Positions 1,000 to 59,702 of a DNA stretch of 64,000 nucleotides are shown in pieces. The notes below the pieces were generated by a model that saw nothing but the letters and a program-made list of their open reading frames with translations, was not told the DNA's origin and searched no databases. A program made the position numbers and the translations under genes. The stretch lies in the IMG/VR virus record IMGVR_UViG_3300025121_000282, positions 1 to 64,000 of that record; one strand, 5' to 3'. The stretch's first letter is position 1. Every line of letters starts with the position of its first letter.

Positions 1000-2961
1000 G
1001 TGATGTCTATGTCTACAAATTACATTGAAGAACTGGTAACCAAGCTTCAGGCCTGGGATGCCGCCTACACCATGGGCACCCCCGCCGTTAGTGACGATGT
1101 GTATGACGCTGTCAAAAGAGAAGTATACCTAGCTGCCCCTGGTCACCCGTATCTCAATGCAGTTGGCGCTCCTGTACCAGCCACCTCCCGATGGCCGGAA
1201 GTTAGGTATACCACTGTTATGGGTTCTCTGCACAAAGTGCACACAGAACCTGAGTTCAGAGACTGGGCAACCAAGACAGGCTCTAACACGTTTAGGGCCT
1301 CGTACAAGGGTGATGGTTTTGCTCTGTCTTTAATGTATGAAAAAGGTGTTTTGGTGTGTGCTGGCACTCGTGGGGAGGGAGACCGCGGGGAAAACATTTA
1401 CCATAATGCCATTTTGTTTGCTGGAGTGCCCCAGCGTTTACCTCACCCTTTAACCACTGAGATTCGTGGGGAGGTGATCCTTACCAATTCTCAGCGGCTA
1501 AAGATGGTGGAAGACGGTCTTCGTAGTGAGGCATACGCGAACAATAGGAATGGAGCAGTGGGGGCTGGGAAAGCTGGTGACCCGACAGATAGGTCTAAAT
1601 CCAAGCTTTGTTCCTACCTTACTTTTATCGCGTATGCTGTTGTTGGTGGTGTGAACGGACTAGTAGACAGAGAGATGGAATACAAGGTCCTTAGGTCCTT
1701 AGGTTTCAACACGTTCACATACATCACTGGTGGTATTGACGCCATAATTGGGTTTATGAATGACGAAACCCTGCGTCGTCCCCTTTTGGACTTTGATATT
1801 GATGGTGTGGTAGTAGAGGTATATAATTTCCAAGACTGCAACAAACTCGGCATGGGCCCTGACAATAGGCCGAGGTATGCAAGAGCCTGGAAGTTTGAAG
1901 CAGAAACCGCCATCGGAACTAACAATATGGTTACATGGGAAGTCGGTCAGGGTGGCACAATCACCCCCTGTGCCAACTTTAACCCTCCCATCAGCTTAGG
2001 TGGTACCAGTATTTCCAGGGCTTCTCTTCACAATGCAAAGTGGGTTAAAGACCACGCCATAGGCGATGGCGCAATCGTCGTAATTAAACGAGCAGGAGAC
2101 GTAATTCCGCAGGTAGTGTCTGTGGTTACCCCTGGCCCAAGCGGTGTTTCTTCACCCCCAGCTTTTTGCCCCGAGTGCGGCGCGGTAGTTGATTACAAAA
2201 CTACCAAAGACGGCGTGGGCGCTCATCTTTGGTGCACCAACATCAAGTGTTTCGCCAGAGTTTATGGCAAGATTGAACGTTGGATAGACACACTTGGTGT
2301 CAAGCAGTTTGGTGGGGCGTTGATTACTGCTCTGGTTAGAGAGAACTTGGTTTCTTCCCCGGATGACCTTTACAAACTGAAAGCGGATGCCGTCGCTGAG
2401 TTGCTTAAGCCTGATAGTAAATCCAGGTTTGGTGATTCGGCCAGGACTGCAATTCAAAACCTCAAGGCTGTGAAAGAAGTGGATTTAGCCACATTCGTTG
2501 CAGGCCTAGGTATTACGGGGGTAGACCGTTCAACGGTCCAGTTAGCTATAGACTCTGGGTTCAAAACATACGATAGCCTATTGGTCGCCACCGTGCCCAA
2601 GTTGGCTTCTATCCCTAAGATGGGCGCTCACACCGCTCAAAAATTGGTGGATGGGCTAATCTCCACTGCCCCCATCGGTAGACGACTACTGGTGGCAGGG
2701 ATCAAGGTAGCACCGCCAAAAACTGGTAAATTTACTGGACTCAAAATATGCTTTACTGGAAGTAGAGACTTAGTAGAGATAGCCTCTGCTGAGGGGGCCC
2801 GTATAGCCAGTTCTTGCTCCAAAGACACTAGTTTCTTGGTGGCGGAAGATCTGGCCTCTGTTTCTGGTAAAGCCGAACAGGCTAGAAAGTACGGCGTTAA
2901 AATCATAACCAGAGACGAGTTCTTGGCCATGTTGACAACTGCCGGGCCTCCTTGTTGCTAA
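1000..2961 (+). CDS. ligA: NAD-dependent DNA ligase
   Basis: Domain Ia 'DDVYDAVK', 'MGSLHKV', adenylation motif KGDG, OB fold 'RAGDVIPQV', Cys4 finger CPECG..C..C, HhH repeats and a C-terminal BRCT 'ICFTGS'. Confidence 0.97.
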   Translation: MMSMSTNYIEELVTKLQAWDAAYTMGTPAVSDDVYDAVKREVYLAAPGHPYLNAVGAPVPATSRWPEVRYTTVMGSLHKVHTEPEFRDWATKTGSNTFRASYKGDGFALSLMYEKGVLVCAGTRGEGDRGENIYHNAILFAGVPQRLPHPLTTEIRGEVILTNSQRLKMVEDGLRSEAYANNRNGAVGAGKAGDPTDRSKSKLCSYLTFIAYAVVGGVNGLVDREMEYKVLRSLGFNTFTYITGGIDAIIGFMNDETLRRPLLDFDIDGVVVEVYNFQDCNKLGMGPDNRPRYARAWKFEAETAIGTNNMVTWEVGQGGTITPCANFNPPISLGGTSISRASLHNAKWVKDHAIGDGAIVVIKRAGDVIPQVVSVVTPGPSGVSSPPAFCPECGAVVDYKTTKDGVGAHLWCTNIKCFARVYGKIERWIDTLGVKQFGGALITALVRENLVSSPDDLYKLKADAVAELLKPDSKSRFGDSARTAIQNLKAVKEVDLATFVAGLGITGVDRSTVQLAIDSGFKTYDSLLVATVPKLASIPKMGAHTAQKLVDGLISTAPIGRRLLVAGIKVAPPKTGKFTGLKICFTGSRDLVEIASAEGARIASSCSKDTSFLVAEDLASVSGKAEQARKYGVKIITRDEFLAMLTTAGPPCC

Positions 2962-34454: not shown

Positions 34455-34477
34455 ATAGAACTCAATCATAGCTAGCA

Positions 34478-34526
34478 GCTGAGGCCAACTTTCCGTAACA
34501 AGGAAGTTGGCCTCAGCCGTATTTGG
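34478..34526 (+). terminator. GC-rich hairpin with GTATTTG tail after the scaffold gene
   Basis: Perfect 14-bp inverted repeat gctgaggccaactt (34478-34491) / aagttggcctcagc (34504-34517), followed by cgtatttgg. Confidence 0.65.
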
Positions 34527-34618
34527 ATATCAAAGTTGGCCCAAACCTCGTTAAACCTTAAATCAAATGTTAGGTGTTAGGTGTTCATACCGTACTTGTA
34601 GTTTAAGGAGAATCAAAA

Positions 34619-35239
34619 ATGGCAGGTCAGTCTAATGCTGATTTCAAGGGAAGCAGCGATCGACTTCGAATTTTGTATCGAGGCCACTCGAATTCTAGTT
34701 CGAAGCTAACGGAAGATGCTTACACTAACACCAACCCTCCGATTGCGGCGCTTGCTGGAGTTGCCAGCAGCACCCTGACCGGAATCACCAAGACTGGTGT
34801 TCTTGGCTCCTCGGTGGCTGTCACCCGTCCGGATGCTGGTGGTGGCTACATTGGTGGCCCTCCGTCAAATGAGGCTCTCGAAGGCAACTTCCGCCCCCTC
34901 GGTCTCTTCCGTCGTGACGCCAATGGCCTCCCGAATGAGAACGACCCGGGCGTTGCATCGGAAAAGACTGCTTACCTCCACGGCGGTGGCCAGTATGGAT
35001 GCCAGTTGTACGAATCCAAGATTCTAAACACTGGCGCCGCACTTTCGCCGTCTTGGACCAGTGGTGTTCTGGTTTATTGCTCCCGCAATGGTCTCATCAC
35101 CACGCTGGACAACGCCAACAACACCCTGGAGCGGGTTGCTGCTCACAGCATGTCTCCTGCCACTGGCACCGTGATGGGCGTGGTTCTTATGGGCCCGACT
35201 TCGGCAATTGCTGAGGTTACGCTCGACCTTCACGTTTAA
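34619..35239 (+). CDS. putative head decoration/cement protein (paralogue 1)
   Basis: Gly-rich beta protein upstream of the capsid gene with an AAGGAG ribosome-binding site; clearly homologous to the next ORF. Confidence 0.6.
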   Translation: MAGQSNADFKGSSDRLRILYRGHSNSSSKLTEDAYTNTNPPIAALAGVASSTLTGITKTGVLGSSVAVTRPDAGGGYIGGPPSNEALEGNFRPLGLFRRDANGLPNENDPGVASEKTAYLHGGGQYGCQLYESKILNTGAALSPSWTSGVLVYCSRNGLITTLDNANNTLERVAAHSMSPATGTVMGVVLMGPTSAIAEVTLDLHV

Positions 35240-35250
35240 TTGGAGGTCAC

Positions 35251-36036
35251 ATGAGCTACTTTGGAATCTCAAATCAGGATTTTAAGGGGCTAGCCGGTCG
35301 GCTTCGCATCCTTTATCGGGGCCATGGCAACTGCATGGCAGTCCTGGTGGATGACGCCTACACCCAGGCTAACCCGGGTCAGGCCATCGTATCAGATGAA
35401 GCCACCCCCACTTCCAGCACCTTGACGGGTGTTACGAAGCGTGGTGTGCTTTCTGGTTCGGTAGCTTTCACTCGTCCTTCCACATCAGGCAACGTGGCTG
35501 TGGATAACATGGTAGGTGGCCCTCGTCGTCGTGGTGGTTCCAGCATCGGGGCCGCTAACGCTGAACAGGCCGTAGATGGCACCAACGCCCACGCAGAAGA
35601 TGCACGGACGCACGTAATTGGCCTGTTTATCAACGATGCAATGGGCAACCAGAGCTTCGACAATCAGGCAGGCGTTGCATCGGGTAAGATTGCGTATCTT
35701 TCTGGTCCCGTTGGGTCGGTGGGCGTCCAGGTCTACGAGACCCGGCAGCAAATTGACTGGGCCCGTGGCGGGGCTGGGGCGGCTGTCTCTTGGGGCAGTG
35801 GTCAGTATGTGTACGGGTCTATAAACGGACTTGTCACCAACCTTGTTCGTGATGCTCTGGAGTCCTATTCCACTGGCGTACTGAATGATGCCGGTAATGG
35901 ACTTACTGATGCAGCCGGTGGAGCAGTGGCCGCTCCGTCAGTGTCCATCATGGGAACCACTAAGTTCGGGCCTACTGCGGCTTTGCCAGAGGTCTGTTTT
36001 GACATGCGCTTGTTCAAGTACCGTACGGTCGCTTAA
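35251..36036 (+). CDS. putative head decoration/cement protein (paralogue 2)
   Basis: Shares 'DFKG...RLRILYRGH', 'STLTG(I/V)TK.GVL' and 'GVAS.K.AYL' with 34619..35239; GGAGG ribosome-binding site. Confidence 0.6.
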   Translation: MSYFGISNQDFKGLAGRLRILYRGHGNCMAVLVDDAYTQANPGQAIVSDEATPTSSTLTGVTKRGVLSGSVAFTRPSTSGNVAVDNMVGGPRRRGGSSIGAANAEQAVDGTNAHAEDARTHVIGLFINDAMGNQSFDNQAGVASGKIAYLSGPVGSVGVQVYETRQQIDWARGGAGAAVSWGSGQYVYGSINGLVTNLVRDALESYSTGVLNDAGNGLTDAAGGAVAAPSVSIMGTTKFGPTAALPEVCFDMRLFKYRTVA

Positions 36037-37315: not shown

Positions 37316-40189
37316 ATGACTGATTACCAACAATTGTTAATTGCTGCAGGCATTACTCCGGGTACTATCCATGAACTGTACCTAAAGCACACAGATGTGG
37401 AATTGGCAGCCCAGGCTTCTGTGTTTGACCAGATAGTCCCGGAACATGTGGTGGCTTATTGGCGTAAAAAATGGGGCGTGAAGACTCTAACCTTTCGTCA
37501 GCGTAGAGACCTGGGCAAAGGTATACCAGACATTTCTGGACTCACTAAAGAGAAGTTTCTGGAGTTACATACCAATTTTGGAGACACTCAAATTGCCAAA
37601 ATTTATAACATCAGTAAACAGGGTATAGCCAAGCTTAGACAGCGATATGGCATTGCAGCCGTCAGTTATGAGAAGAGAATTAACCCAACAGACGAACTTA
37701 CTGATTTTCAGAAAGCCGTAATTATTGGAACATCTTTGGGAGATGGCCACATTACTGCGTCAGGATGTTTAAAGTTAGATCACTCTGCGGCTCAAATGAA
37801 TTACATCAAATTCAAACACGGTGTAGTTGCAAATATTTCTAAACGATTGCAATACTTTGAAGGAGATAGATTTAGAGAATACTTGACTTATGGGTTCACT
37901 TTCGTGACCTCTCCACACTCATGGGTAAAGGAGCTTCGTTCTATTTTGTACCCAGATGGAATCAAAGTTTTTCCATTGGATGTAATTGCTAGTTTGAAGC
38001 CTGTCTCTTTAGCTATGTGGTATTTTGACGATGGTCACTATGAAGACTATCCTAGTATTGCGATGGGACTGGCTACTTTGACTGATGTAGACAACGCTAT
38101 TGTTGGATTAGACACAGCCTTTGGTCTTAAAACGTATCTTTCTCCACGATCTTTACCCAATTGCCATGTTCTTCAGTTCAGAGCAGAGTCTAGTGATAGA
38201 CTATTTGAGTTAGTAGCTGAGTTTGCTACTCCAGATGTTGCCCACAAGATCCCTAAAAAATTTTGGCCTATTAAAATCGACTTACCTAAATACAAGGTTA
38301 CCAGAGAGGAGCTTCAGGTATCTAATGACCTGCAGAAGAAGTCTAAGTCTTGGCTCACAATGACTGAGGCAGAACAAGCAGAGCACACAAATAACGTTTT
38401 TCTTGGGTGGAGAGAAGTTGGTTTTCCTTTTCAGACTCCTAAATCAGAAGAGCTTCAAACCATCGTTGGTTTAGAAGACTATCAGATTTTAGACGAAGAT
38501 ACGATCAAAGCTTGCCAAGTTGGGCAAAGTATATGTCAAGCTTTCATGCCCCACATTTGGGGTCAAAAACCCATTGATTCTACTTACTCTATTAAAGAGA
38601 TTTTTGATGATGATCACATGTTTAAAACCGTTATTGTCAAATCTTTAAATGAAAAGAAGTCTGTTACAGCTGGTGCAATTAGAAGTTCTTTGCGTTCATA
38701 TCGCCGTTCAGGCTTATACAATTTTCGCCCAGCAGCTGCCCGTGTGTTGGTAGATAAGTATTGCGTTTCTGGCGGTACTGTATTTGACCCCTGTGCAGGG
38801 TGGGGTGGCAGACTTTTAGGTGTATTGCTATCTGAACAGAGGGTCAATTATGTGGCCTGTGAGCCTAGCTCTGCTACTTTTAATGGTTTAAATGAACTGA
38901 CCAATTGGTTGCAAGAGCACGGGGTAAATGCCAACAATCGCGTTCATTTGCACAACACCCCAATAGAGGACTTCATAGTTCCGGATGGCATAGACCTTAT
39001 TCTGACCTCCCCTCCATACTGGAAAAAAGAAATTTATTCAGACGAACCAACCCAATCTAGTATTAGGTATACTACTTATTCTGACTGGTTGGATCGATTT
39101 TTGAAACCGTTGATTGAGAATTCTTGGAAGAAACTCAATGCTGGTGGCCACATGATTTTGAATGTAGACGATTTTAATTTAAATAAGGAAACTTACAACT
39201 TAGTAGAGGATACTCAACGAATTGCGACTCAAGTTGGGTGCGGCTCTCCAATATCAATTTTTAAATATGACATGGCTTCTTATGGTGTAGAAAATTTTGA
39301 GTCGGTTTTAATATGGCAGAAAGAATCTGGGGTTGTACTTCCATTCCATACTAGACCTAAAGTCAAGTGTCAGCACTGTGGTGGTGATTTTGAAGCTAGA
39401 GCCGGCAAACAATTTTGCTCTACTTTGTGTCGAGTAAAAGGACATCGTCATAATTCTAAATTGCAATCTGACACAGCCAAATTTTGGGCATTGGACGAGT
39501 ATACCCGTTCTATTACAGATAAGTGTAGGTCTTGTGGATTTTATAAACTAAAATCTAATCTTTTGGGTCATGTATGTTCTGACTGTTCTGTTTTACCTCA
39601 TAACCCCAAGAAAATTTGCAAATTTTGTTCAAACCCGTTTCAAGCCGAAAATCTTACTCATCAATACTGTACTGAAGCCTGTTATAAAAAATACCGCAGA
39701 CGTGAATATCGAAAAACAGTTCCTGCTAAAACAACTCGCACAGCCAAATGTCAAATTTGTGAGAACGAATGGGAAGTCCCAGCAACAGGTGGGTGGCCTA
39801 CTAAATGTGATCAGTGTAAGAATCAATCTGATTTAGACGATCGGAAACGAGTTTGTCAGTATAGACATTGCAACACTGAATTTGTAGACACCTCTAAGTT
39901 TCAGGGTATGCATTTTTGTTCACCTGAACATCGAGGTGCCGAAAAACGCATACGTTCAGGTGCAACTGCTGATGTGCCCCCTAAGGATCTCGTTATTGGT
40001 CGTCAACGCAGTAAATGTATGCTGTGTAAACAGCCATTTCTGCTTAATGGAACTAAAAATACTCGTTGTGATGATTGTAAGGTAAAGACCAGAACTAAAC
40101 AGTGTTTGCGGTGTAGCAATCCTTTTATTGATGACAGTGCAAATAACACGTGCAAATTTTGTATTGTTTGCACTAAAATTTCACGTTAA
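37316..40189 (+). CDS. HTH + LAGLIDADG endonuclease + amino-DNA methyltransferase + multiple zinc-finger fusion
   Basis: HTH 'DTQIAKIYNISKQGIAKLR'; LAGLIDADG motifs 'IIGTSLGDG' and 'AMWYFDDG'; MTase 'FDPCAGWGGR' and 'LTSPPY'; about seven CxxC...C(x)xxC motifs at the C-terminus. Confidence 0.85.
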   Translation: MTDYQQLLIAAGITPGTIHELYLKHTDVELAAQASVFDQIVPEHVVAYWRKKWGVKTLTFRQRRDLGKGIPDISGLTKEKFLELHTNFGDTQIAKIYNISKQGIAKLRQRYGIAAVSYEKRINPTDELTDFQKAVIIGTSLGDGHITASGCLKLDHSAAQMNYIKFKHGVVANISKRLQYFEGDRFREYLTYGFTFVTSPHSWVKELRSILYPDGIKVFPLDVIASLKPVSLAMWYFDDGHYEDYPSIAMGLATLTDVDNAIVGLDTAFGLKTYLSPRSLPNCHVLQFRAESSDRLFELVAEFATPDVAHKIPKKFWPIKIDLPKYKVTREELQVSNDLQKKSKSWLTMTEAEQAEHTNNVFLGWREVGFPFQTPKSEELQTIVGLEDYQILDEDTIKACQVGQSICQAFMPHIWGQKPIDSTYSIKEIFDDDHMFKTVIVKSLNEKKSVTAGAIRSSLRSYRRSGLYNFRPAAARVLVDKYCVSGGTVFDPCAGWGGRLLGVLLSEQRVNYVACEPSSATFNGLNELTNWLQEHGVNANNRVHLHNTPIEDFIVPDGIDLILTSPPYWKKEIYSDEPTQSSIRYTTYSDWLDRFLKPLIENSWKKLNAGGHMILNVDDFNLNKETYNLVEDTQRIATQVGCGSPISIFKYDMASYGVENFESVLIWQKESGVVLPFHTRPKVKCQHCGGDFEARAGKQFCSTLCRVKGHRHNSKLQSDTAKFWALDEYTRSITDKCRSCGFYKLKSNLLGHVCSDCSVLPHNPKKICKFCSNPFQAENLTHQYCTEACYKKYRRREYRKTVPAKTTRTAKCQICENEWEVPATGGWPTKCDQCKNQSDLDDRKRVCQYRHCNTEFVDTSKFQGMHFCSPEHRGAEKRIRSGATADVPPKDLVIGRQRSKCMLCKQPFLLNGTKNTRCDDCKVKTRTKQCLRCSNPFIDDSANNTCKFCIVCTKISR

Positions 40190-45575: not shown

Positions 45576-48407
45576 ATGTCCGAAGGAATCAATAAAATAC
45601 TACGCAGTTTGCTTGTACTTAATGACAAGCCCGACCAAGAGAATGCAGCTAGGAATTTTGAACAGGTTTTAGTATATAGAATAGACTTTACTGAAGATGA
45701 AGAGAAAGAGATCTTTAATAAAATAAAGAACCACTTTTCTACCTATAGAGAAACCCCTACTATTCAAGACTTGCGTGATGCATTTGAGTTAGAAAAGAAT
45801 CCTGGGGCCATTTTAGTTTTAGATGAAATTTCGAAAGAACCTTGTTACGTCCGCAGTTCTTTTGAAGCTTTGGTTATGGGAGAACTGGAGAAGCAAAGAA
45901 TAGCCAAAATCCATATTTTGGCCAAAGAGTCAGCGCACATAGCATCACATGGCTTAAAAATAGGCAAAGTAGAGCTAAAGGGAGTCAATGATGCCATTCG
46001 TCATTTCACCGGTGGAGCCGACTCTCTACTTGTGATGAATAACGGCGTCAGATTGTCTGGCGATGTGACCCAGGACCATGACGACTTTATAGAAGAAGTT
46101 GAGTACACCCACTCGCACCCAGAAGAAGCTTATGGGTGCCTTACTGGTATAATCCAGGTTGATGAAGGGTGTATGGGGGTAAAACCCTCTGAATTCTGGG
46201 CACACGCTGCATACAGCGGGGGGTTGAAATGTATTAGTGGGGGGTCACGTATTTTTGATAGCAGAGTAGGCATTTTACGTGAAGCCCGAGATGTATACCA
46301 GAATGGTGCCGTAGGTCTGTACACCCACTCATTAAACCACGCCACTGGACAAATCGAATTGGCTGGCGTTAGCCACATACAAGAAAACGGAGTTCGACCT
46401 GTATTTGTACTTGAAAGCTCTCAAGGCCGACAGACAGGGGTCTCAGACAACCACCCATTTCTTACACCTAATGGGTACGTAGAACTTAAGGACCTTAAGA
46501 TTGGAGATTGGATTGCAGTTCCATCTCGTCTTCCAATCCCACTCAGTGCAACCAATCAATTTACTGATGCTCATGCAAAATTGATTGGCTATATGCTGGG
46601 GGGCGGATACATGAACAAAGGTCTGACTTTTGTTACTGTGTCTGACGCCATTAGAACAGATTTTATTGAGCAACTGGTTACTATGGGGTATGTAGAAGGA
46701 AAAGCTACCCCATTACACCCACATTTTCGGTCCACATTTCCCAAAACTAGAGTGCCCACATTACGTATGGGCCATTCTGCTCGTAGTACTAAACGTTATT
46801 GTGCTTCCCCATTGTTACTGTTATTACAATCTTTGGGGCTAATGGGTAAAATTGCGTCCACCAAATTTATTCCAAATCAGCTGTGGTCTATGTCGGATCA
46901 TCAGTTAAAATTACTGGTTGGGGCCATGTGGTCCACTGATGGCCACCTCTCTGTGTGGCGCAATGGTAAGGGTAAAAGGGTACCATCAGTCAAAATTAAG
47001 TACACCACCAAAAGTAGACAACTGGGGGCAGATTTACAATTAGTCTTGCAACGTTTGGGGATTCGTACCTCGTTGGACCGGCACTGGGTTAAATACAAAG
47101 GAGAACGAAGACTGTATTGGACAATAGCAGTTATAGGCCATTCGGCTAAATTCAAATTCTTAACAGACATTGTGGTGATTGGCAAGACTGAAGCTTGTCG
47201 TCTTGCTATTGAAGCGCTTGAGACCCAGCGTGATACATGTGATGACCACATACCTCTGTCTGTATTTAAGAATGTCAAGATTCCACTTCGGGCTGTAAAC
47301 AAAACAGGCAAGACCCCTGTTTACATTGGTTCTATAACCAAGAAGCAAAAAAAAGTGTCTAGAACTGTGGCACTACAATTTGCTTCTGTGCTGAATGACC
47401 CTAGTATCAATACACTGTTGAGTGACCATTTAAACTGGGAACAGGTCCGCTCGATAGTGTGTACTGGTGAGGAGATGACATATGACCTGTCTGTGCCGTC
47501 TAACGAGAACTTTGTTGTAGACGGCTTTGTTACCCACAACACTACTTTTGCTTTAAACTGGGCATACTTTACTGCTGTGTTTCTTAGGAAGAATGCTGAG
47601 TATTTTAGCCTGGAAATGCCATACAAACAGGTTAGACGCATACTAAAGGTGATGCATTCTACTCATTGGAAGTTTACTGATGCACCTTCTGAGGGTGGTC
47701 TCGGGTGGGAACCACTAGAATATAAGAAAGTGCGAGATGGCAAACTAACCCCAATTGAGTTAGAGCGCCTTAAGTACATATCCAAGGACCTTTCAAATCA
47801 AGAGTTACATGGGGCAATACACGTAGTCAAACCCGACCGTGAAGTAACTATAGCAGACCTTAGATTTGTAGCCGAGGCCCAGCATAAGAAGACACCTCTC
47901 TCTGTTATATTTATAGACTACTTGCAATTAGTACAGTCTTCGGATAAGTCTTTAAGGTCAACTACAGAACGGCAAAATGAAGTAGCCCGCGCAGGTAAGC
48001 ACCTCGCCATGAATTTCAATGGTGGTGCAGGGATAGCGGTGATAGGCCTGTGGCAGATCAATAACGAAGGCTACAAACACGCCCAGAAGAAAATGGAAGC
48101 TAAGGAAGAAAAGAAAGGTGGTGTATACGATTTGTCTCACCTTTCTTGGGCAAACGAACTAAAGAATGCCGCCGATTATGTTACATACACCTATGTTGAT
48201 GATGACCTTCGTGCTACAAACGAGGCCATTATAGGCAATATGAAAAACAGAGATAATAGCATCTTTTCTGAAGCTAGAATGAGAGTTGAATGGGGGCAAC
48301 GTAAGTTGGAGTCCCTAATGATCAACTCACCCCTATCTGCCAACAAATCATTTGAAACAGCAGGCGTGAAGGACTTAGACATCGATGTCCTCCTCGGCGG
48401 TCCTTAA
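45576..48407 (+). CDS. dnaB: DnaB-like replicative helicase containing an intein
   Basis: Walker A 'AYSGGLK|TT' interrupted by an intein, 'YFSLEM', 'IFIDYLQL', 'WQIN' and 'MKNRD'. Confidence 0.92.
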   Translation: MSEGINKILRSLLVLNDKPDQENAARNFEQVLVYRIDFTEDEEKEIFNKIKNHFSTYRETPTIQDLRDAFELEKNPGAILVLDEISKEPCYVRSSFEALVMGELEKQRIAKIHILAKESAHIASHGLKIGKVELKGVNDAIRHFTGGADSLLVMNNGVRLSGDVTQDHDDFIEEVEYTHSHPEEAYGCLTGIIQVDEGCMGVKPSEFWAHAAYSGGLKCISGGSRIFDSRVGILREARDVYQNGAVGLYTHSLNHATGQIELAGVSHIQENGVRPVFVLESSQGRQTGVSDNHPFLTPNGYVELKDLKIGDWIAVPSRLPIPLSATNQFTDAHAKLIGYMLGGGYMNKGLTFVTVSDAIRTDFIEQLVTMGYVEGKATPLHPHFRSTFPKTRVPTLRMGHSARSTKRYCASPLLLLLQSLGLMGKIASTKFIPNQLWSMSDHQLKLLVGAMWSTDGHLSVWRNGKGKRVPSVKIKYTTKSRQLGADLQLVLQRLGIRTSLDRHWVKYKGERRLYWTIAVIGHSAKFKFLTDIVVIGKTEACRLAIEALETQRDTCDDHIPLSVFKNVKIPLRAVNKTGKTPVYIGSITKKQKKVSRTVALQFASVLNDPSINTLLSDHLNWEQVRSIVCTGEEMTYDLSVPSNENFVVDGFVTHNTTFALNWAYFTAVFLRKNAEYFSLEMPYKQVRRILKVMHSTHWKFTDAPSEGGLGWEPLEYKKVRDGKLTPIELERLKYISKDLSNQELHGAIHVVKPDREVTIADLRFVAEAQHKKTPLSVIFIDYLQLVQSSDKSLRSTTERQNEVARAGKHLAMNFNGGAGIAVIGLWQINNEGYKHAQKKMEAKEEKKGGVYDLSHLSWANELKNAADYVTYTYVDDDLRATNEAIIGNMKNRDNSIFSEARMRVEWGQRKLESLMINSPLSANKSFETAGVKDLDIDVLLGGP
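46230..47540 (+). mobile_element. intein (437 aa) with LAGLIDADG-type endonuclease in DnaB
   Basis: Starts CISGGS; block B 'VSDNHP'; motifs 'LIGYMLGGG' (degenerate) and 'AMWSTDG'; ends 'GFVTHN' followed by Thr. Confidence 0.95.
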
Positions 48408-54293: not shown

Positions 54294-54749
54294 GTGTCTG
54301 GGTTCAAACGAGACGAGGTTGTAGCCCTTCCTGGGTTCGAATCAACAGACCGCAAAACTTGGCTCAGGCTGAACACAATCATGGCTGACGAAAATCTGAT
54401 GCGACGGTTACACATGGGCCTCCCAGTTGGAAATCTCAAAGACCGCACTCAAGACCTTTATTTTGTAGAAGCCGCTAAGCACTTTGGAATCCCAATCGAA
54501 GAAGTCACCCCAGAACAGCGTCGCCAGATGAAGGATATTCTATTCGGTCAGCTGTATGGTCAATCTGAAGAAGTAAAAGCACTTCGTGCTGAGGCCAAGT
54601 TCATGAATTTTGCCGAAGGCCTCCCTTATGGCATGCCAGACAAACTTGTGGAACAACCATCAGACAAATACAGACTTGCTAGACAGCAGGCAATGGCTAA
54701 CGTGTGGAGAATAGTGTACGGGTTGCCAGACGAGCCCACTGAAGACTAA
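54294..54749 (+). CDS. small protein with PolA fingers/O-helix-like repeats
   Basis: 'DLYFVEAAKHFGIPIEEVTPEQRRQMKDILFGQLYG' matches PolA motif B and its upstream helices; two further degenerate copies follow. Confidence 0.65.
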   Translation: MSGFKRDEVVALPGFESTDRKTWLRLNTIMADENLMRRLHMGLPVGNLKDRTQDLYFVEAAKHFGIPIEEVTPEQRRQMKDILFGQLYGQSEEVKALRAEAKFMNFAEGLPYGMPDKLVEQPSDKYRLARQQAMANVWRIVYGLPDEPTED

Positions 54750-54847
54750 CCCTTTTATAAATACTGAAAATACCAGTGCTTCCGCGACCTGGGCCAACAG
54801 CGCGGTAATCTCGTCCAAGTTGTAACATAACTGACTGGAGATTACCC

Positions 54848-55303
54848 ATGGCAATGGTTCGCGCAAAATACCGGTGCATGGCCTTGACCCAGCATTATGA
54901 TGGTCATACAACAGCAACGTTTCGCCCTGTTTACCGCAATAGTAAACAAGGACCGGATGAGGAAAACAAACTATTCAGCCTGGAGACACCATCCGGCGAG
55001 GCTGAACTGAACTACACCGAGTGCCCAGCCGATTTAAAAGCTGGTGATTTTTATTATATTGACATGGAAAAATGTACTGGTGAAGAATGCCCACAGGCTT
55101 GGACCATAACAGGGACTGAGCGGCAAGCTGGATGGAACAACACTAAAATTACTTTAGCTCTTCCATGGCAATACTCCTCTGCAAATCCCCGATGCGGTTC
55201 TGTCCAGCTTGGGATTACTCGCCAGGAGACCGCTGACTTATTTACTCCTTTTGGTAGTAAGTGGAAAGTGACATTTAGTTTCGCTGAAAAGTCAGCTGAC
55301 TAA
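54848..55303 (+). CDS. hypothetical small beta protein, apparently two tandem domains
   Basis: 'VRAKY...TPSGEAEL...GDFYYIDM' followed by a similar '..CGSVQL...GSKWKVTF'; GGAG ribosome-binding site. Confidence 0.65.
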   Translation: MAMVRAKYRCMALTQHYDGHTTATFRPVYRNSKQGPDEENKLFSLETPSGEAELNYTECPADLKAGDFYYIDMEKCTGEECPQAWTITGTERQAGWNNTKITLALPWQYSSANPRCGSVQLGITRQETADLFTPFGSKWKVTFSFAEKSAD

Positions 55304-55338
55304 AGATTTTGGTTACTTTTTATGACTTGGTACCTGTA

Positions 55339-55398
55339 CCAACCTGAGGGCAACCAAAGATGTCATTCAAGAAACTTTCTGCTCAACTCCGATCCGCT
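55339..55398 (+). repeat. 5' cassette repeat (UTR plus first 13 codons), copy 1
   Basis: 54 of 60 nt identical (my count) to 61542..61601. Confidence 0.9.
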
Positions 55399-55743
55399 CT
55401 AAAGTTTTATGATATAGCCGAAACAATAGACATGGGGGACATAAGGGTAGACCTGCGAGACCGAGATACATGGTATGGTATAGCTGGGGACTTTAGGGGT
55501 ATAGAAAAATCATGGAAAGATGGCCCTCCTATTTACACCATAGAAGTAGCAGACCGTCTTGATTTGTTATCTGACTACGACAATGAAGATGTGGTATAGC
55601 TGATAAACGAAACGACCGAGACTCTGCGTTTGATGCTTGAGAGCACATACAAAACTATATCTCAAGAAGAGGGGTATCATTTGATCCCATCTCCAGAGAA
55701 AATATTTGAAAGCCAAGACGCCTACATAAAAAGTGGTGTGTGA
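55360..55743 (+). pseudogene. KLSAQLRSA-leader protein interrupted by an in-frame TAG at 55597-55599
   Basis: The ORF track stops at 55599, but the frame stays open for 47 more codons to TGA 55741-55743, about 20 nt before the hairpin. Read-through length is 127 aa. Confidence 0.55.
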
Positions 55744-55763
55744 CAAGTAACGCAACCCTGTAA

Positions 55764-55814
55764 CTGAGCCCCAGTTTTGAGTTTTCCTCACTGGGGCTCA
55801 GCTGTATTTGAAAT
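55764..55814 (+). terminator. hairpin with GTATTTG tail, 3' cassette repeat copy 1
   Basis: 12-bp stem ctgagccccagt / actggggctcag; 55765..55814 is 49/50 identical to 61935..61984. Confidence 0.8.
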
Positions 55815-55864
55815 AGCTCTTTATTGGTGTTCGTACACACAAGAAGCAATGGAGATGTACGAGC

Positions 55865-56311
55865 ATGGAAAAGTTGTCTGTACTTTTACTGAAGTCAGTG
55901 CTTGGTGGTGAGTCTAGTGTTCCTAAAAAATACATGCACATTGACTTCAAGCCTCCTATGTCGGTAGCAGATGCCGCCGCCAAAGGGCTTGAATACAGGA
56001 GAAGAGCCTCTCCCTCAAATAAAGGAGGCTTAACTCCTGCAGAAGCTGCTAAGCATGGTCTGGGGTCCGGAGTACAAAGGGCCATAAACTTAAAGAACAG
56101 AGACCGCGTATCACCAGAAGTTATACGCCAGATGGTATCTTTCTTTTCACGTCATGAGAAGAACGCAACCATAGAGCCTGAAAACAAAGAAACCCCTTGG
56201 AACGACAGGGGTTATGTCGCGTGGCTTCTTTGGGGTGGAGACCCGGGCAGGTCCTGGGCTAATAAGGTTATGAACCAAATGCGTGCAGCAGATAATAAAT
56301 ATAACGATTGA
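55865..56311 (+). CDS. conserved phage hypothetical protein (WLLWGGD motif)
   Basis: 'AAAKGLEYRR', 'MVSFFSRHE' and 'GYVAWLLWGGDPG' resemble a widespread small phage protein family; function unknown. Confidence 0.6.
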   Translation: MEKLSVLLLKSVLGGESSVPKKYMHIDFKPPMSVADAAAKGLEYRRRASPSNKGGLTPAEAAKHGLGSGVQRAINLKNRDRVSPEVIRQMVSFFSRHEKNATIEPENKETPWNDRGYVAWLLWGGDPGRSWANKVMNQMRAADNKYND

Positions 56312-56332
56312 CAGTCCGACTTATAATGGGAA

Positions 56333-56360
56333 GTACTCCATAACTAGTAGTGTGGAGTGT
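56333..56360 (+). promoter_or_regulatory. hairpin overlapping the Shine-Dalgarno sequence of the PARP gene
   Basis: actcca (56335-56340) / tggagt (56353-56358); TATAAT at 56322-56327 just upstream. Confidence 0.4.
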
Positions 56361-57910
56361 CTCAAGTGGGAACTATTGCGCACAATGTCGTCCTCAACTT
56401 CACTGATCTGACTGGCGACAAGACCGGCTGTGTAACACTTGGCTCCAATAAGTTCTGGAAGGGCCACGTGGTTGATCACGGAAATGGTACTGCAGACTTC
56501 GAGTGTAAGTGGGGCCCTACAGGAGAGCCTGGGTCAGACAAAGGTAGCAAGAGGGGGATTTCACTTGCTGAGGCCATCAAGATTCTCAATTCGAAAGTGG
56601 CCGAGAAGGAAAAGAAGGGTTACACCCGCCTTCAGGTACGGGATGATGCTGAAGAGGCCGCCAAGCAGGCAGCGAAGGGCATCGTAGCGGCTGTGGCTCC
56701 TGGCATTGCAGCTGCTCCAGCCCCCAAGCGTATTTTCCACCCTGAGGTGGGTAAGCTTCTCTCCACGATTTATGGAGCTACATCTACAGTAGTTCGAGCC
56801 GGTTTGTCATCTCAGGCGGGTGCTACAGCTAGCAATCCCATCGGAAACCTCTCCGATAGCCAACTGGACATTGGTGGGTCGATCTTGGATGAAATCGGAC
56901 TCGCTCTTGAAGCTGAATTCGGTCGAGAGTCCACCAACAACAAAGCCACCACTTTCCCTCTCGCCAAAGACGGCACTCCCAGTCCGAAAGTGATCGACCT
57001 GACCAATCGATTTATGTCCAATGTTCCAAGGGAAATTGGGCGAGAAATGCGTGGTCGTGAGAATCTTCATCGACTGGTCATCTCAAGTTATGAGCGCCTC
57101 CAGGCTCAGCGTGAATTCCTACAACTGTTGAGAGACGCGCATCTGACGCAAGCAGTCTTTCAGGCAGCAGGAGCACAGACTGCCTCCTCTGACAAAGAGG
57201 CAGTCTGGTACGACGGGTTGAATTGTGCCATCGAGCACTTGGACCCAGCAAGTCCCGAATTCCGCAGGGTGGTCGAGATCTTTAGCACTGGCCAGAGTCA
57301 GAAGAACTCAAACTGGTTTCGTAATGGTCGATCCACTCTGCGAGTGGCTAACGTTTTCAAATACTGCAGAAACGGAACGGAGTCCACTTTTAGTGCCTAC
57401 GCCGACAAGGTAGCCCGAAAGCCTGGAGCAGTTGGCAAAATCATGGCATGGCATGGTACGAAAGCCGAAAACACTATCGGGATATCCAAGCAGGGTCTTT
57501 TGATGCCTGAGAATTTGCCGCGGGGTGTGAGTCAAACTGGCAAAGCCTTTGGAAAAGGGATCTACCACGCCCCTAACTTCCTCGTTGCTGGAGTTAAAAC
57601 GGTTGGTCCTTACCCCACTGATGGTACTAATGGTGCGCTCAAGAGCATGAACTATACCGGCATGTCTGGAGCCGCTTATGGTGGCGGGAATGCCGCGGCA
57701 TACATGTTTCTTCAAGAAGTGGCTTTGGGTAAGGCTGATGTCCATTTCTCAGCTTGTTGGGATAAACACCGCCCCAACGACTTCCCGAACAACGACTTTA
57801 TCTTTGCTTGTGGTGCCAAGAACCAAGGCGGTTTTGTCCACGACGAAATTGTGACATTCGACCAGAACGCACAGAAGTTCGCTTATTTACTTCTCATCAA
57901 GAGTGTCTAG
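56357..57910 (+). CDS. PARP-like ADP-ribosyltransferase with WGR, helical regulatory and catalytic domains (start possibly GTG 56366)
   Basis: WGR-like 'SNKFW...CKWGPTG'; regulatory-like 'IGNLSDSQL' and 'DLTNRFMSNVP'; catalytic H-Y-E triad 'WHGT', 'FGKGIYHA', 'HDEIVTFD'. Confidence 0.9.
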   Translation: MSQVGTIAHNVVLNFTDLTGDKTGCVTLGSNKFWKGHVVDHGNGTADFECKWGPTGEPGSDKGSKRGISLAEAIKILNSKVAEKEKKGYTRLQVRDDAEEAAKQAAKGIVAAVAPGIAAAPAPKRIFHPEVGKLLSTIYGATSTVVRAGLSSQAGATASNPIGNLSDSQLDIGGSILDEIGLALEAEFGRESTNNKATTFPLAKDGTPSPKVIDLTNRFMSNVPREIGREMRGRENLHRLVISSYERLQAQREFLQLLRDAHLTQAVFQAAGAQTASSDKEAVWYDGLNCAIEHLDPASPEFRRVVEIFSTGQSQKNSNWFRNGRSTLRVANVFKYCRNGTESTFSAYADKVARKPGAVGKIMAWHGTKAENTIGISKQGLLMPENLPRGVSQTGKAFGKGIYHAPNFLVAGVKTVGPYPTDGTNGALKSMNYTGMSGAAYGGGNAAAYMFLQEVALGKADVHFSACWDKHRPNDFPNNDFIFACGAKNQGGFVHDEIVTFDQNAQKFAYLLLIKSV

Positions 57911-58001
57911 AAAAGCAAACTTCAGTCTTGACAAGTCTCGATTGACCCTACCCCTCTTGTGACGAATAAGTTGTAAGCCCTAACCAACTGGAGTATATAC
58001 T

Positions 58002-58145
58002 ATGGTCATCATCGTTATCCTGCTCGTCTGCTCTGCCCTCGGCTATGCCATGGCGGGAACCCGCAAGAAGGCCCTTGGAGCAATCCTCGGTTTCTTCCTG
58101 GGACCATTCGGTATCCTGATCGCCGCCATTGCGTGCAAGGACTGA
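58002..58145 (+). CDS. 47-aa two-TM membrane protein (not in ORF track)
   Basis: Translated by hand as MVIIVILLVCSALGYAMAGTRKKALGAILGFFLGPFGILIAAIACKD; GGAG ribosome-binding site upstream. Confidence 0.75.
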   Translation: MVIIVILLVCSALGYAMAGTRKKALGAILGFFLGPFGILIAAIACKD

Positions 58146-58149
58146 TGCC

Positions 58150-58470
58150 ATGAGCACTTATTCAAAATGGCTTCTGACCATCTTGTCCGTGGTTGCCGTG
58201 CTTTCGGGCGCTACCTACTTTCATCGCTATAGGAAAGATCACTGCAAGGAACGACTCAAGGCGCAGGCTAGTGAATTCGCCATAATGAATGAGGGGGAGG
58301 TCCGAGCGTGTTATGGTGATCTCACCACGAGTGCGGCCCTGGATACCCATATCAAATCACTCGGGTTGGCTTCTGGGGCTGAGCTGACCTGGAGTGAGAG
58401 GCATGACGCCTTTGTCGCCATTGCCAAGGGTAGGTTCGCAGACGGCAATACGGGAGGACTGGTCAAATGA
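58150..58470 (+). CDS. N-terminally anchored membrane protein
   Basis: MSTYSKWLLTILSVVAVLSGATYF hydrophobic anchor; in frame with track ORF 58129..58470. Confidence 0.6.
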   Translation: MSTYSKWLLTILSVVAVLSGATYFHRYRKDHCKERLKAQASEFAIMNEGEVRACYGDLTTSAALDTHIKSLGLASGAELTWSERHDAFVAIAKGRFADGNTGGLVK

Positions 58471-58646
58471 ACACCCTCCTGAAACTCGCCATGACCTTTC
58501 TTTTTGCTACGGGCTGTGGTCGAGGCACCACGTGTACGAGTGGTGCAGGCTGCTTCGTCGGGCTGTATTGCACATCTTCGGGGTTCTGCCAGGACAATTC
58601 CGAGAATGCACCAAAGGTCATCTACATTTACAAAGACTGCCGCTGA
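58467..58646 (+). CDS. 59-aa Cys-rich putative lipoprotein (not in ORF track)
   Basis: MNTLLKLAMTFLFATG|CGRGTTCTSGAGCFVGLYCTSSGFCQDN...; lipobox-like Cys and an ATGA overlap. Confidence 0.75.
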   Translation: MNTLLKLAMTFLFATGCGRGTTCTSGAGCFVGLYCTSSGFCQDNSENAPKVIYIYKDCR

Positions 58647-58648
58647 AC

Positions 58649-58870
58649 ATGAATACCCTCCTAATCCTCACCTTCATCCTGGCCTGTGGGTGCTCCCGTC
58701 TGGGAGAGGATTGCTTCAACCATTGGGATTGTGACGACAACCAGAGGTGTTCTTTTTCTGGCACCTGTCGTTTGTCTTGGTATCTGGACAGATGTGTGGA
58801 GAAGAATTCCTGCGCCCATGGGCTGTATTGCTCAGACCCAGGCGTCTGCCTGCGGGAACCGAAGGACTGA
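58649..58870 (+). CDS. 73-aa Cys-rich putative lipoprotein
   Basis: MNTLLILTFILACG|CSRLGEDC..C..C..C plus a second C..C..GLYC..C module. Confidence 0.75.
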   Translation: MNTLLILTFILACGCSRLGEDCFNHWDCDDNQRCSFSGTCRLSWYLDRCVEKNSCAHGLYCSDPGVCLREPKD

Positions 58871-58874
58871 TCCC

Positions 58875-59141
58875 ATGAACACCTTCCTCAAATTCCTTCT
58901 GATCGCGTCCCTCATTGCCCCCAGCGCCGTTCAGGCCAAGCCCTGCGGTCGCGGGTACATCGCGGACAACAAGGTCTGTCACAAGGGTGGTGGATACTAC
59001 CTCCCGGCCCCCGCCCGCAAAGTGCCCAAGACCAAGGGACGTCTTGGTTCTGTGTGTGCCAGCAACTCGGAGTGCAAGAAAGGGCTGTACTGTACCACAT
59101 CGGGTTATTGTCAGGAGAACAACCACAAGGTGGCCAAATGA
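58875..59141 (+). CDS. 88-aa secreted Cys-rich protein
   Basis: Signal peptide ending AVQA, then 'KPCGRGYIADNKVCHKG' and 'CASNSECKKGLYCTTSGYC'. Confidence 0.75.
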   Translation: MNTFLKFLLIASLIAPSAVQAKPCGRGYIADNKVCHKGGGYYLPAPARKVPKTKGRLGSVCASNSECKKGLYCTTSGYCQENNHKVAK

Positions 59142-59473
59142 ACACCCTGAATACCATCCTGACAATAACCCTGGTCACTGCCCTCATCTTGCCCAATGCG
59201 GCCGGCGCCAAGCCATGTGGGGATAGTTACATCTCAGACAACGAGACCTGTCACAAAGGCGGGGGCGGGGATGACAGCACCCCGCCTTCTTGGGGAAGTG
59301 TTATCCTTTGGAGTTCAGTGGTTGTTGGGGGCTTGTTTTTCCTGGCCTGGGCCACGAGTAAAAGCGGCAACCCGTCTCACGGTACAGGTCCTGGCCCAAA
59401 TGTGCAGCGGGGCGACTCGTTCGAGTCCTTTGTACAAGACCTCGGCGGGACTGTCACTATCACTCACAAGTGA
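59138..59473 (+). CDS. 111-aa exported, membrane-anchored Cys-motif protein
   Basis: Signal peptide ending AAGA, 'KPCGDSYISDNETCHKG', then a TM helix. Confidence 0.75.
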   Translation: MNTLNTILTITLVTALILPNAAGAKPCGDSYISDNETCHKGGGGDDSTPPSWGSVILWSSVVVGGLFFLAWATSKSGNPSHGTGPGPNVQRGDSFESFVQDLGGTVTITHK

Positions 59474-59480
59474 GGAGAAA

Positions 59481-59702
59481 ATGGCACATAGACCTAACAG
59501 AACCCTGCAAGACACAGATGACCACATTGTTTCAATTGTGGTCGTGATTGTAGCCGTACTATTCGCACTTGGGGTTGGGGTGTATACAGTCTCATCCAGC
59601 ATCGACTGTGACCGCAAGTGTGCACCCAAGCAGGGTGTATTCGCCCGCCAAATCATGTCTTACCAGTGTGTCTGTGTAGACCCAGAAGACATAAAAGAAT
59701 AG
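59481..59702 (+). CDS. 73-aa single-TM protein with Cys4 C-terminal domain
   Basis: GAGGAG ribosome-binding site, TM 'IVSIVVVIVAVLFALGVGVY', then C..C..CxC. Confidence 0.7.
   Translation: MAHRPNRTLQDTDDHIVSIVVVIVAVLFALGVGVYTVSSSIDCDRKCAPKQGVFARQIMSYQCVCVDPEDIKE

Follow-up and report, generated by a model that had tools for sequence, protein, structure and literature searches.

We describe a gene for a poly(ADP-ribose) polymerase (PARP) in a 64,000-nucleotide stretch of phage DNA (the window), which comprises bases 1-64,000 of the 314,886-bp IMG/VR virus record IMGVR_UViG_3300025121_000282. The record derives from groundwater metagenomes and has a CheckV completeness of 100%. The gene product is confirmed as a full protein of the PARP1-3 type, with a WGR domain, a helical regulatory domain (HD) and an ADP-ribosyl transferase (ART) domain, and is very likely an active transferase. 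It belongs to a clade of huge-phage proteins in which the arginine of the WGR motif has been replaced, and is encoded together with candidate erasers of ADP-ribosylation. We propose, at about even chances, that the enzyme carries out reversible, probably polymer-forming ADP-ribosylation tied to nick and break metabolism of phage DNA, and that its activation is non-canonical.

Domain architecture and catalytic residues

All three domains were recognized by Pfam above the respective cut-offs (Table 1). The PARP_reg match (PF02877, residues 129-275, 34.2 bits, cut-off 26.8) lies directly N-terminal to the ART domain, where the PARP catalytic family (PF00644) matched residues 301-459 with 43.3 bits (cut-off 26.7). 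A profile of 34 homologues, compared with the PDB, retrieved human PARP2 (E = 1.5e-71) and PARP1 (E = 7e-70), in an alignment that begins with the initial strand of the WGR domain and ends with the final one of the ART domain; with E-values of about 1e-71, chance similarity is excluded. An AlphaFold2 model of the protein had a mean predicted local distance difference test score (pLDDT) of 87.1 and a predicted template-modelling score of 0.83. Its top fold match was the WGR-CAT part of PARP1 on a DNA double-strand break (4dqy_C, template-modelling score 0.72), followed by PARP2 on DNA or nucleosomes, with both WGR and CAT covered. The HD (residues 129-288) was modelled as seven helices and aligns with the HD of PARP1/2.

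The catalytic triad H366, Y403 and E497 is invariant in the 34-sequence alignment, in which identity falls to 22%, as are H366-G367 and K429-S430-x-x-Y433, which match the pocket residues of PARP1/2. Among members of the huge-phage clade the histidine is present in 121/121, the tyrosine in 120/121 and the glutamate in 119/120. The combination characteristic of the PARP family, an H-Y-E triad with a nicotinamide pocket (HG...Y...SxxY...E), is thus present, and so are two hallmarks of the PARP1-3 clade, an HD ahead of the ART domain and an N-terminal WGR fold. Of the third hallmark, the Trp-Gly-Arg motif, tryptophan and glycine are found and the arginine is replaced by P54. Architecture, fold, catalytic residues and strong conservation together are the grounds on which we predict an active enzyme.

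An earlier reading of the window, made from the letters alone (the sequence-only reading), had described a phage-encoded PARP with this layout and triad, and had read the motif as WGP (residues 52-54); these observations are confirmed. One peptide that it compared with PARP1, DLTNRFMSNVP, occupies residues 214-224, and HMMER aligns it with PARP1 '...DLSNRFYTLIP...' as claimed. The other, IGNLSDSQLDIGGSILDEI, is present at residues 162-180, but the PARP1 counterpart quoted for it was not reproduced by any alignment; the peptide lies in a part of the HD for which the family profile gives PARP2 'PLGKLTVAQIKAGYQSL' as the aligned segment.

The public gene call gives a product of 514 amino acids. 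The real start of the gene is probably the second GTG, at 56366, which yields this length, judging from the placement of the GGAG sequence, the public call, and the N-termini of relatives, which start with 'MAGTI...'. Scans for σ70 promoters and terminators around the gene returned fewer sites than in shuffled sequences, and the TTGACA/TATAAT pair 5' of the gene has a spacer of just 8 nt.

Table 1. Features of the PARP gene and of the ligase gene, in window coordinates
Feature	Coordinates	Strand	Remarks
PARP gene	56357..57910	+	longest open reading frame 517 amino acids, GTG start; TAG stop at 57908-57910
GGAG, Shine-Dalgarno-like	56354..56357	+	8 nt 5' of GTG 56366; read from sequence
WGR domain	56387..56629	+	residues 11-91; Pfam PF05406, 39.6 bits (cut-off 22)
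Insertion 1, LTGDKTGC	56408..56431	+	residues 18-25, first WGR hairpin
'WGR' motif, W52-G53-P54	56510..56518	+	proline at the arginine position
Ala/Pro/Lys-rich linker, WGR to HD	56654..56740	+	residues 100-128; pLDDT <50 at 102-118
HD (PARP_reg)	56741..57220	+	residues 129-288; holds both peptides compared with PARP1
ART (catalytic) domain	57224..57907	+	residues 290-517
H366-G367	57452..57457	+	triad His, NAD-binding; by alignment to PARP1/2
Y403	57563..57565	+	triad Tyr; aligns with the tyrosine of PARP1 'GKGIYFA'
Insertion 2, ~20 residues	57572..57637	+	residues 406-427, catalytic Tyr to KSxNY; short strands modelled
K429-S430-M-N-Y433	57641..57655	+	nicotinamide-pocket motif; equivalent of 'SKSANY' in PARP1 and PARP2
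H495-D496-E497	57839..57847	+	E497, catalytic glutamate, aligns with E of PARP2 'YNEYIVY'
NAD-dependent DNA ligase (LigA)	1000..2961	+	C-terminal BRCT domain, residues 574-644; candidate partner

That the gene belongs to a phage is evident from its surroundings. Besides LigA, the window encodes an exonuclease V/Dda-like helicase, UvsX, a large terminase, a portal, a prohead protease, a DnaB-type helicase and a family-A DNA polymerase, and nearly all long open reading frames (ORFs) are on the + strand. The region is present in 12 runs from several studies. Logan contigs from independent runs of three studies were placed on positions 54500-59500: a 15-kb contig at 130x coverage from an independent run spans the interval with zero differences, a 9.2-kb contig from a second study covers the PARP region with two single-nucleotide polymorphisms, and contigs from a soil run cross both junctions of the gene. 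An assembly chimera is ruled out by the crossing of both junctions in these independent assemblies. The GC content of the gene is 51.9%, and both GC and GC3 fall inside the spread of the genome (z ~0.6). Given this ordinary composition and the reciprocal monophyly of phage and Myxococcota groups (see below), recent capture from a host is ruled out as well.

Phylogenetic position and the altered WGR motif

More than 120 protein clusters share 50-70% identity with the phage PARP and have the same architecture; many of them are on contigs of 280-536 kb. Below this clade, full-length similarity falls from E = 1e-108 to E = 1e-19. All of the nearest cellular proteins come from Myxococcota, among them the isolate Paraliomyxa miuraensis; they show 41-45% identity along their whole length and are encoded on long chromosomal contigs of 8-12-Mb genomes. 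Near-identity to a host chromosomal gene, which the sequence-only reading had named as grounds for dismissal, was looked for in species-representative genomes of bacteria and archaea and was not found. The closest copy in species-representative genomes of bacteria and archaea (56% identity) is on a 27.6-kb contig of an unclassified metagenome-assembled genome, and groups inside the phage clade. In maximum-likelihood trees the PARPs of Myxococcota and huge phages form one long-stemmed group with a support of 100. A careful tree, from which P0121 (long branch), L076 (internal stops) and redundant rows were removed, supports the phage clade with 100/100 and a single Myxococcota clade with 84/77, i.e., two sister groups. 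The link to Myxococcota concerns one gene, in genomes of 60-72% GC versus 47% in the phage, and transfer in either direction is compatible with the sequence trees. The epithet 'eukaryote-like' used in the sequence-only reading is misleading, the nearest relatives being those of the huge-phage clade and Myxococcota.

The two insertions listed in Table 1, the first with an eight-residue consensus LTGxKTG[C/A], are common to the huge-phage clade and the Myxococcota PARPs only. A second, separate clade of WGR-containing PARPs (L010-L030) is found on a different set of huge viral contigs, the longest of them 448 kb. When this phage is compared with its complete 536-kb relative (G003), the PARPs are 65% identical, while portals and DNA polymerases are 46% and ~38% identical, respectively. 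Being better conserved than portal and polymerase, the PARP is under strong constraint.

The third position of the WGR motif is Ser in 52, Pro in 49, Ala in 15, Thr in two and Glu in two of 120 clade members, and is never Arg or Lys; W52, G53, T55 and G56 are nearly invariant. In contrast, all 33 Myxococcota PARPs have YGRV, with Tyr in place of Trp and the arginine kept. The second huge-phage clade also has YGRV, and the other outgroup rows keep G-R wherever they are aligned (five rows are gapped). In PARP1/2 the tryptophan of the motif touches the DNA 5' end and the arginine couples DNA binding to activation: PARP1 R591A binds DNA normally and loses DNA-dependent activity, while PARP2 R153A (R140A in the numbering of another isoform) is essentially inactive and fails to form a stable complex with DNA (PMC4081085, PMC6294510). 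In bacterial PARPs, the glycine and arginine are the most conserved, co-evolving positions of WGR (PMC5966428).

The DNA contacts of PARP2 were mapped onto the phage protein through the profile-PARP2 alignment and PMC6294510, and their conservation was read from the clade alignment. The equivalents kept are N31 and K32 (N129 and K130 of PARP2), W34 (Y132), W52 (W151), K80 (K179) and K84 (K183). Since most contact equivalents are conserved, DNA binding by the phage PARP is plausible. Coupling of this binding to activation through the canonical WGR arginine is not plausible from the sequence and, the lineage having lost this arginine, the trigger is expected to differ from that of the human enzymes. 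The proposal of the sequence-only reading that the enzyme is DNA-end-activated can therefore not be transferred directly.

Two relatives carry further genes close to PARP. In a 437-kb relative, a stand-alone ORF of 226 amino acids (L091:16264-16944), which matches the PARP catalytic domain only (39.7 bits), is located 4.7 kb downstream of the full-length PARP gene, in a locus that also contains an Apyc1-like anti-Pycsar gene. In a 528-kb relative, a type I-C CRISPR-Cas gene set (Cas3, Cas5d, Csd1, Cas7; L089:581-8839) and a Cas12f/TnpB-like gene are found 2-9 kb from the PARP gene of that phage.

Erasers, ligase linkage and proposed function

A search of the genome for partners that hydrolyze or bind ADP-ribose, suggested by the sequence-only reading, revealed three genes. 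A bacterial-type PARG of 250 amino acids is encoded on the - strand at genome positions 82,075-82,827; it matches PF10021 with 83.4 bits in a six-frame genome search and with 80.7 bits in hmmscan of the ORF, and the PARGs of D. radiodurans and T. curvata with 105 and 94 bits, respectively. Its catalytic loop, GGG-X7-QEE, is intact ('PGGGARNGVQAQEED'). A PARP and a PARG with GGG-X6-8-QEE in one genome, the combination taken to indicate a complete poly(ADP-ribose) (PAR) cycle (Perina 2014), are thus found together. An ADP-ribosylglycohydrolase (ARH) of 342 amino acids, recognized with 172 bits, is encoded at 74.8-75.8 kb; among solved structures it is closest to a T. thermophilus enzyme and ARH3. 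A MacroD/YmdB-type macrodomain is encoded outside the window, at ~156,170-156,822 (G000:C1; L002:1363-2015), in two overlapping frames: Pfam Macro positions 1-68 match one frame and 77-118 the other, with the break at or near a run of five G residues (L002:1722-1726). The split could reflect a genuine frameshift or pseudogene, programmed frameshifting, or an assembly error in the homopolymer. No NAD salvage or turnover genes (NAMPT/NAPRTase, NMNAT, Nudix) were found in the genome. One flank of the ARH gene (~74.2-76.7 kb, L006) holds a gene resembling thymidine kinase, recognized by eye only, and another neighbour encodes a phage-type inorganic pyrophosphatase domain (PF18823, 124.6 bits), which suggests a nucleotide-metabolism block.

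ARH is present in 4/4 complete PARP-bearing huge-phage records tested, and PARG in all three complete or near-complete records of the second huge-phage PARP clade. PARG also occurs in 9/12 PARP-bearing Myxococcota genomes, and abuts PARP in two myxobacterial loci. As a clade-wide partner of PARP it is ruled out: G003 is devoid of PARG, and close PARG homologues are located off PARP-bearing huge contigs.

BRCT, found at the C-terminus of LigA, is the domain class by which XRCC1 reads PAR in eukaryotes. LigA is a candidate functional partner of the phage PARP because the two genes adjoin in relatives. In three of six neighbourhoods of clade A, to which this phage belongs, LigA is ~0.3-6 kb from PARP: a 437-kb contig has one small gene between the two, a 331-kb contig has LigA 3.4 kb upstream of PARP, and another contig has it 2.2 kb away in divergent orientation. 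No LigA was found within 10 kb of PARP in the 528-kb relative, nor within the 6-kb flanks in the 536-kb relative. In the second phage clade (16 loci), a ligase match occurs within 6 kb upstream of PARP (partial at the locus edge in five), and the next gene after PARP encodes a pyrimidine-dimer DNA glycosylase. One Myxococcota subclade has ARH, LigA and PARP closely packed on the same strand, right behind a type XIII retron. Within each clade the linkage partly reflects shared ancestry, so that it represents about three independent lineages.

The retron-associated locus (L086:1-9605, also L046 and L066) encodes, in order, a WGR/HEAT-ARM protein, a SWIM protein, a reverse transcriptase, ARH, the NAD-dependent ligase and PARP. 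The retron genes match PADLOC type XIII retron models with 626-783 bits, and the last four genes are 11-18 nt apart. The type XIII retron is a classical, vertically inherited retron of myxobacteria (PMC7736814). A functional tie between it and a PAR system is possible from this gene order, in the one subclade concerned.

In the mechanism that we propose, the phage PARP would draw on host NAD+ and attach ADP-ribose, probably as PAR chains, to itself and to other proteins, at DNA nicks, gaps or ends that arise when the phage replicates, recombines or repairs its DNA. The modification would be reversed by PARG, by ARH and, provided that it is functional, by the MacroD-type macrodomain. A plausible output is recruitment or control of the BRCT-bearing NAD-dependent ligase, a viral parallel of PARP1-XRCC1-ligase III. 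The trigger would be another contact, another ligand, or a lower threshold than in human PARPs. By analogy with bacterial enzymes, chain formation is moderately probable: the triad is intact, PARG is co-encoded, and bacterial PARPs with this layout synthesize PAR in vitro, that of C. difficile with the same short spacing before the catalytic glutamate (PMC8120803, PMC5966428). Of the functions considered, the best supported is a role in the metabolism of DNA nicks and breaks, to which we give about even odds; it is favoured by the retention of sensor and regulatory domains, the position of the gene in the replication block, 4 kb downstream of DNA polymerase, and the repeated linkage to ligase and glycosylase genes.

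Several observations weigh against this proposal. The WGR arginine, essential for DNA-dependent activation of PARP1/2, is missing throughout the clade, and the ~20-residue insertion 2 adjoins the active site and may affect catalysis. An H-Y-E triad is no guarantee of chains, since PARP3 and PARP4 carry it and are described as mono-transferases; both are listed as PAR-forming in PMC5966428, and PARP3 is given as a mono-transferase in a 2026 preprint (10.64898/2026.10.17.759577). The Macro gene is frameshifted, PARG was not found in G003, and no close PARG homologue is on a contig of the same length as a PARP-bearing huge contig. The distance between LigA and PARP is 53 kb in this genome. Searches of the ten neighbouring ORFs against Pfam and PHROG gave only families of unknown function and a DNA_pol_A fragment, and the three closest relatives on viral contigs (L007-L009) show no synteny in the surroundings of PARP.

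The main rival explanation, which we regard as doubtful, is host take-over or counter-defence, in which host proteins such as RNA polymerase or defence factors would be modified as by T4 Alt/Mod, but with chains, or host NAD+ would be consumed, and the erasers would protect phage proteins or undo ADP-ribosylation defences of the host, with no role at DNA breaks. Modification of host proteins was proposed for jumbo-phage PARPs by Iyer et al. (PMC7824862), and the loss of the DNA-activation arginine fits an enzyme that is not gated by DNA breaks. PARP is moreover the sole ART detected, with no match to the Alt/VIP2-type ART (PF03496) anywhere in the genome; one subclade of the cellular sister clade lies directly behind a retron; and PARG, ARH and Macro could equally counter host ARTs. 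However, a simple effector has no need of a WGR domain, an autoinhibitory HD and DNA-contact residues, which are under strong selection here. The gene is outside a head or packaging context and has no MuF fusion, unlike injected ARTs (PMC9503650), and its relatives are recurrently linked to DNA ligase and DNA glycosylase. PADLOC models gave no match for the phage PARP, PARG or ARH, and a heavy NAD drain in a phage without NAD salvage genes would starve its own NAD-dependent ligase. It is unlikely, in our view, that loss of the WGR arginine has rewired the enzyme altogether, so that something different from the canonical DNA-break signal triggers it, or so that it stays de-repressed at all times. 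In such an enzyme, PAR chains may recruit the BRCT-bearing ligase, which would make an independent viral PARP1-XRCC1-ligase III axis; alternatively, it may interfere with the PAR and retron-linked systems of those myxobacterial hosts in which the sister enzyme is found.

A decidedly unlikely alternative is that the protein transfers mono-ADP-ribose to terminal phosphates of DNA or RNA, to mark or protect genome ends or nicks, and that ARH, PARG and Macro strip this cap ahead of ligation. The linkage to LigA would fit such a cap-then-ligate cycle, the altered WGR and the active-site insertion could shift the choice of acceptor, and PARP1-3, whose architecture the phage enzyme shares and which can modify such phosphates in vitro, are described as acting on DNA in addition to proteins (PMC8150716). 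On the other hand, the intact catalytic loop of the co-encoded PARG speaks for chains and against single units, and the idea is built on the in vitro behaviour of distant homologues. That the protein is an inactive or purely DNA-binding relic, as the lost arginine and the insertion near the active site might indicate, is highly improbable: triad and nicotinamide pocket are essentially invariant in 121 sequences, and the protein is conserved better than portal or polymerase. The probability that the gene is an assembly chimera or a binned host gene is negligible. A 56%-identical copy does exist on the 27.6-kb contig of a bacterial metagenome-assembled genome (L043), but independent contigs cross both junctions, the region recurs across runs, composition is ordinary, the best chromosomal homologues are 41-45% identical, and relatives are on phage contigs of hundreds of kilobases.

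Reversible ADP-ribosylation at phage DNA nicks and breaks is the preferred reading, and we consider the interpretation offered by the sequence-only reading (a DNA-end-activated, possibly polymer-forming enzyme acting in DNA repair, NAD draining or counter-defence) partly supported.

Genomic surroundings and relation to known systems

Several features of the region around the PARP gene were noted. A 151-amino-acid ORF (54294-54749), 1.9 kb downstream of the 925-amino-acid polymerase gene, contains a 44-residue family-A polymerase match (36.6 bits); a similar small DNA_pol_A-like ORF is located just upstream of PARP in the 528-kb relative (L089:9435-9632) and is the sole common neighbour seen. 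Direct repeats at 55339-55397/61542-61600 (92%) and 55765-55814/61935-61984 (98%), 6.2 kb apart, bracket the PARP region. The first includes the start of a small gene (MSFKKLSAQLRS...), namely its ribosome-binding site and initial codons, and the second is a GC-rich hairpin behind that gene. The intervening 340-380 nt are dissimilar, suggesting a small paralogous gene whose ends are conserved and whose middle has been exchanged. Just downstream of PARP (58467-59141, a 53% GC stretch), three tandem small ORFs with ~260-nt spacing have hydrophobic N-termini and a Cys-rich C-terminal G-L-Y-C-x-x-x-G-x-C (at 58560, 58820 and 59082), and look like a family of small secreted proteins or lipoproteins. 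Farther on, a 241-nt tandem duplication (60156-60396/60587-60827, 76% identity) corresponds to two adjacent paralogous ORFs of ~144 amino acids.

Elsewhere in the window, the large terminase (1066 amino acids, 24999-28199) and the DnaB-type helicase (943 amino acids, 45576-48407) are far longer than usual and match their families in part; they may contain inteins or fused domains. A 957-amino-acid ORF (37316-40189) combines LAGLIDADG, HNH and methyltransferase-like matches. GC content rises to 56% at 34001-36000, versus ~44% in the flanks, over three ORFs of 206-291 amino acids. No tRNAs were found in the window, no DNA similarity to deposited phages was found, and the genome contains no Ku, DenV-type glycosylase or second WGR gene.

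The phage offers a compact, strongly conserved test case, in which a 514-residue writer is encoded alongside erasers in the same genome and exists in more than 120 natural variants. The clade amounts to a natural mutagenesis of the WGR arginine, in which this position is never Arg while neighbouring residues are invariant, and its comparison with the arginine-keeping sister clade of Myxococcota could reveal the way in which a minimal PARP links DNA sensing to catalysis. Judging from the recurrent proximity to NAD-dependent ligase genes, the PARP-ligase partnership may be older than eukaryotic DNA repair, or independent of it in origin. Whether PAR metabolism outside eukaryotes is functional is still described as open (PMC4245714, PMC8120803). 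If ligase recruitment, or interference with myxobacterial PAR/retron systems, proved true, it would be the first demonstrated function of poly(ADP-ribosyl)ation in a phage-bacterium system; if host proteins or NAD+ were the targets, poly-ADP-ribosylation would join the take-over strategies of phages.

Phage PARPs as such are not new, and the novelty implied by the sequence-only reading is overstated. They were reported from sequence in Aeromonas phage Aeh1 and Cellulophaga phage phi4:1 in 2014 (PMC4245714), and in jumbo phages, including BBA65562.1, in 2021 and 2022 (PMC7824862, PMC9503650); all are so far known from sequence, and none has been assayed. In INPHARED, matches were limited to Klebsiella phages vB_KpM_FBKp34 and 05F01 (24-28% identity over 44-60% of the protein), whose genes are annotated as poly [ADP-ribose] polymerase and ADP-ribosylation, respectively. 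The phage PARP is therefore not a new kind of system, and represents a large huge-phage lineage of the PARP1-3 type that is apparently undescribed. What is new is this clade with its altered WGR, the two insertions shared with Myxococcota, the three types of eraser, and the proximity of PARP and ligase genes. The 2014 survey recorded no virus with both PARP and PARG (PMC4245714), whereas both are found here, together with ARH and Macro.

Compared with human PARP1/2/3, the phage protein has the same domain order and fold, the H-Y-E triad, the KSxNY pocket, the WGR tryptophan and the DNA-contact lysines. It differs in being ~18-21% identical, in lacking N-terminal zinc fingers and BRCT, and in having Pro (Ser, Pro, Ala, Thr or Glu across the clade) in place of PARP1 R591 or PARP2 R153. 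It also has the two extra insertions (18-25 and 406-427), and lacks a ~29-residue loop found ahead of the catalytic glutamate in PARP2. HaPARP of Herpetosiphon aurantiacus and CdPARP of Clostridioides difficile likewise combine WGR-HD-ART, H-Y-E and a PARG in the genome; both make PAR in vitro, and HaPARP needs DNA (PMC8120803, PMC5966428). By published description, they differ in keeping the G-R of WGR (PMC5966428). Ordinary bacterial-type WGR-containing PARPs are 22-32% identical to the phage protein and have neither insertion. The Myxococcota PARPs, the sister group, have both, and differ in keeping the arginine, in having Tyr for Trp, and in being chromosomal. Finally, Alt, ModA and ModB of T4 are also phage-encoded NAD+-dependent ADP-ribosyl transferases, but these are mono-transferases of the R-S-E, cholera-toxin type, of which Alt is packaged in the head (PMC8120803, PMC9503650). 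The phage PARP does not have the R-S-E signature; it is of the H-Y-E, diphtheria/PARP type, has sensor and regulatory domains, and is found in no packaging context.

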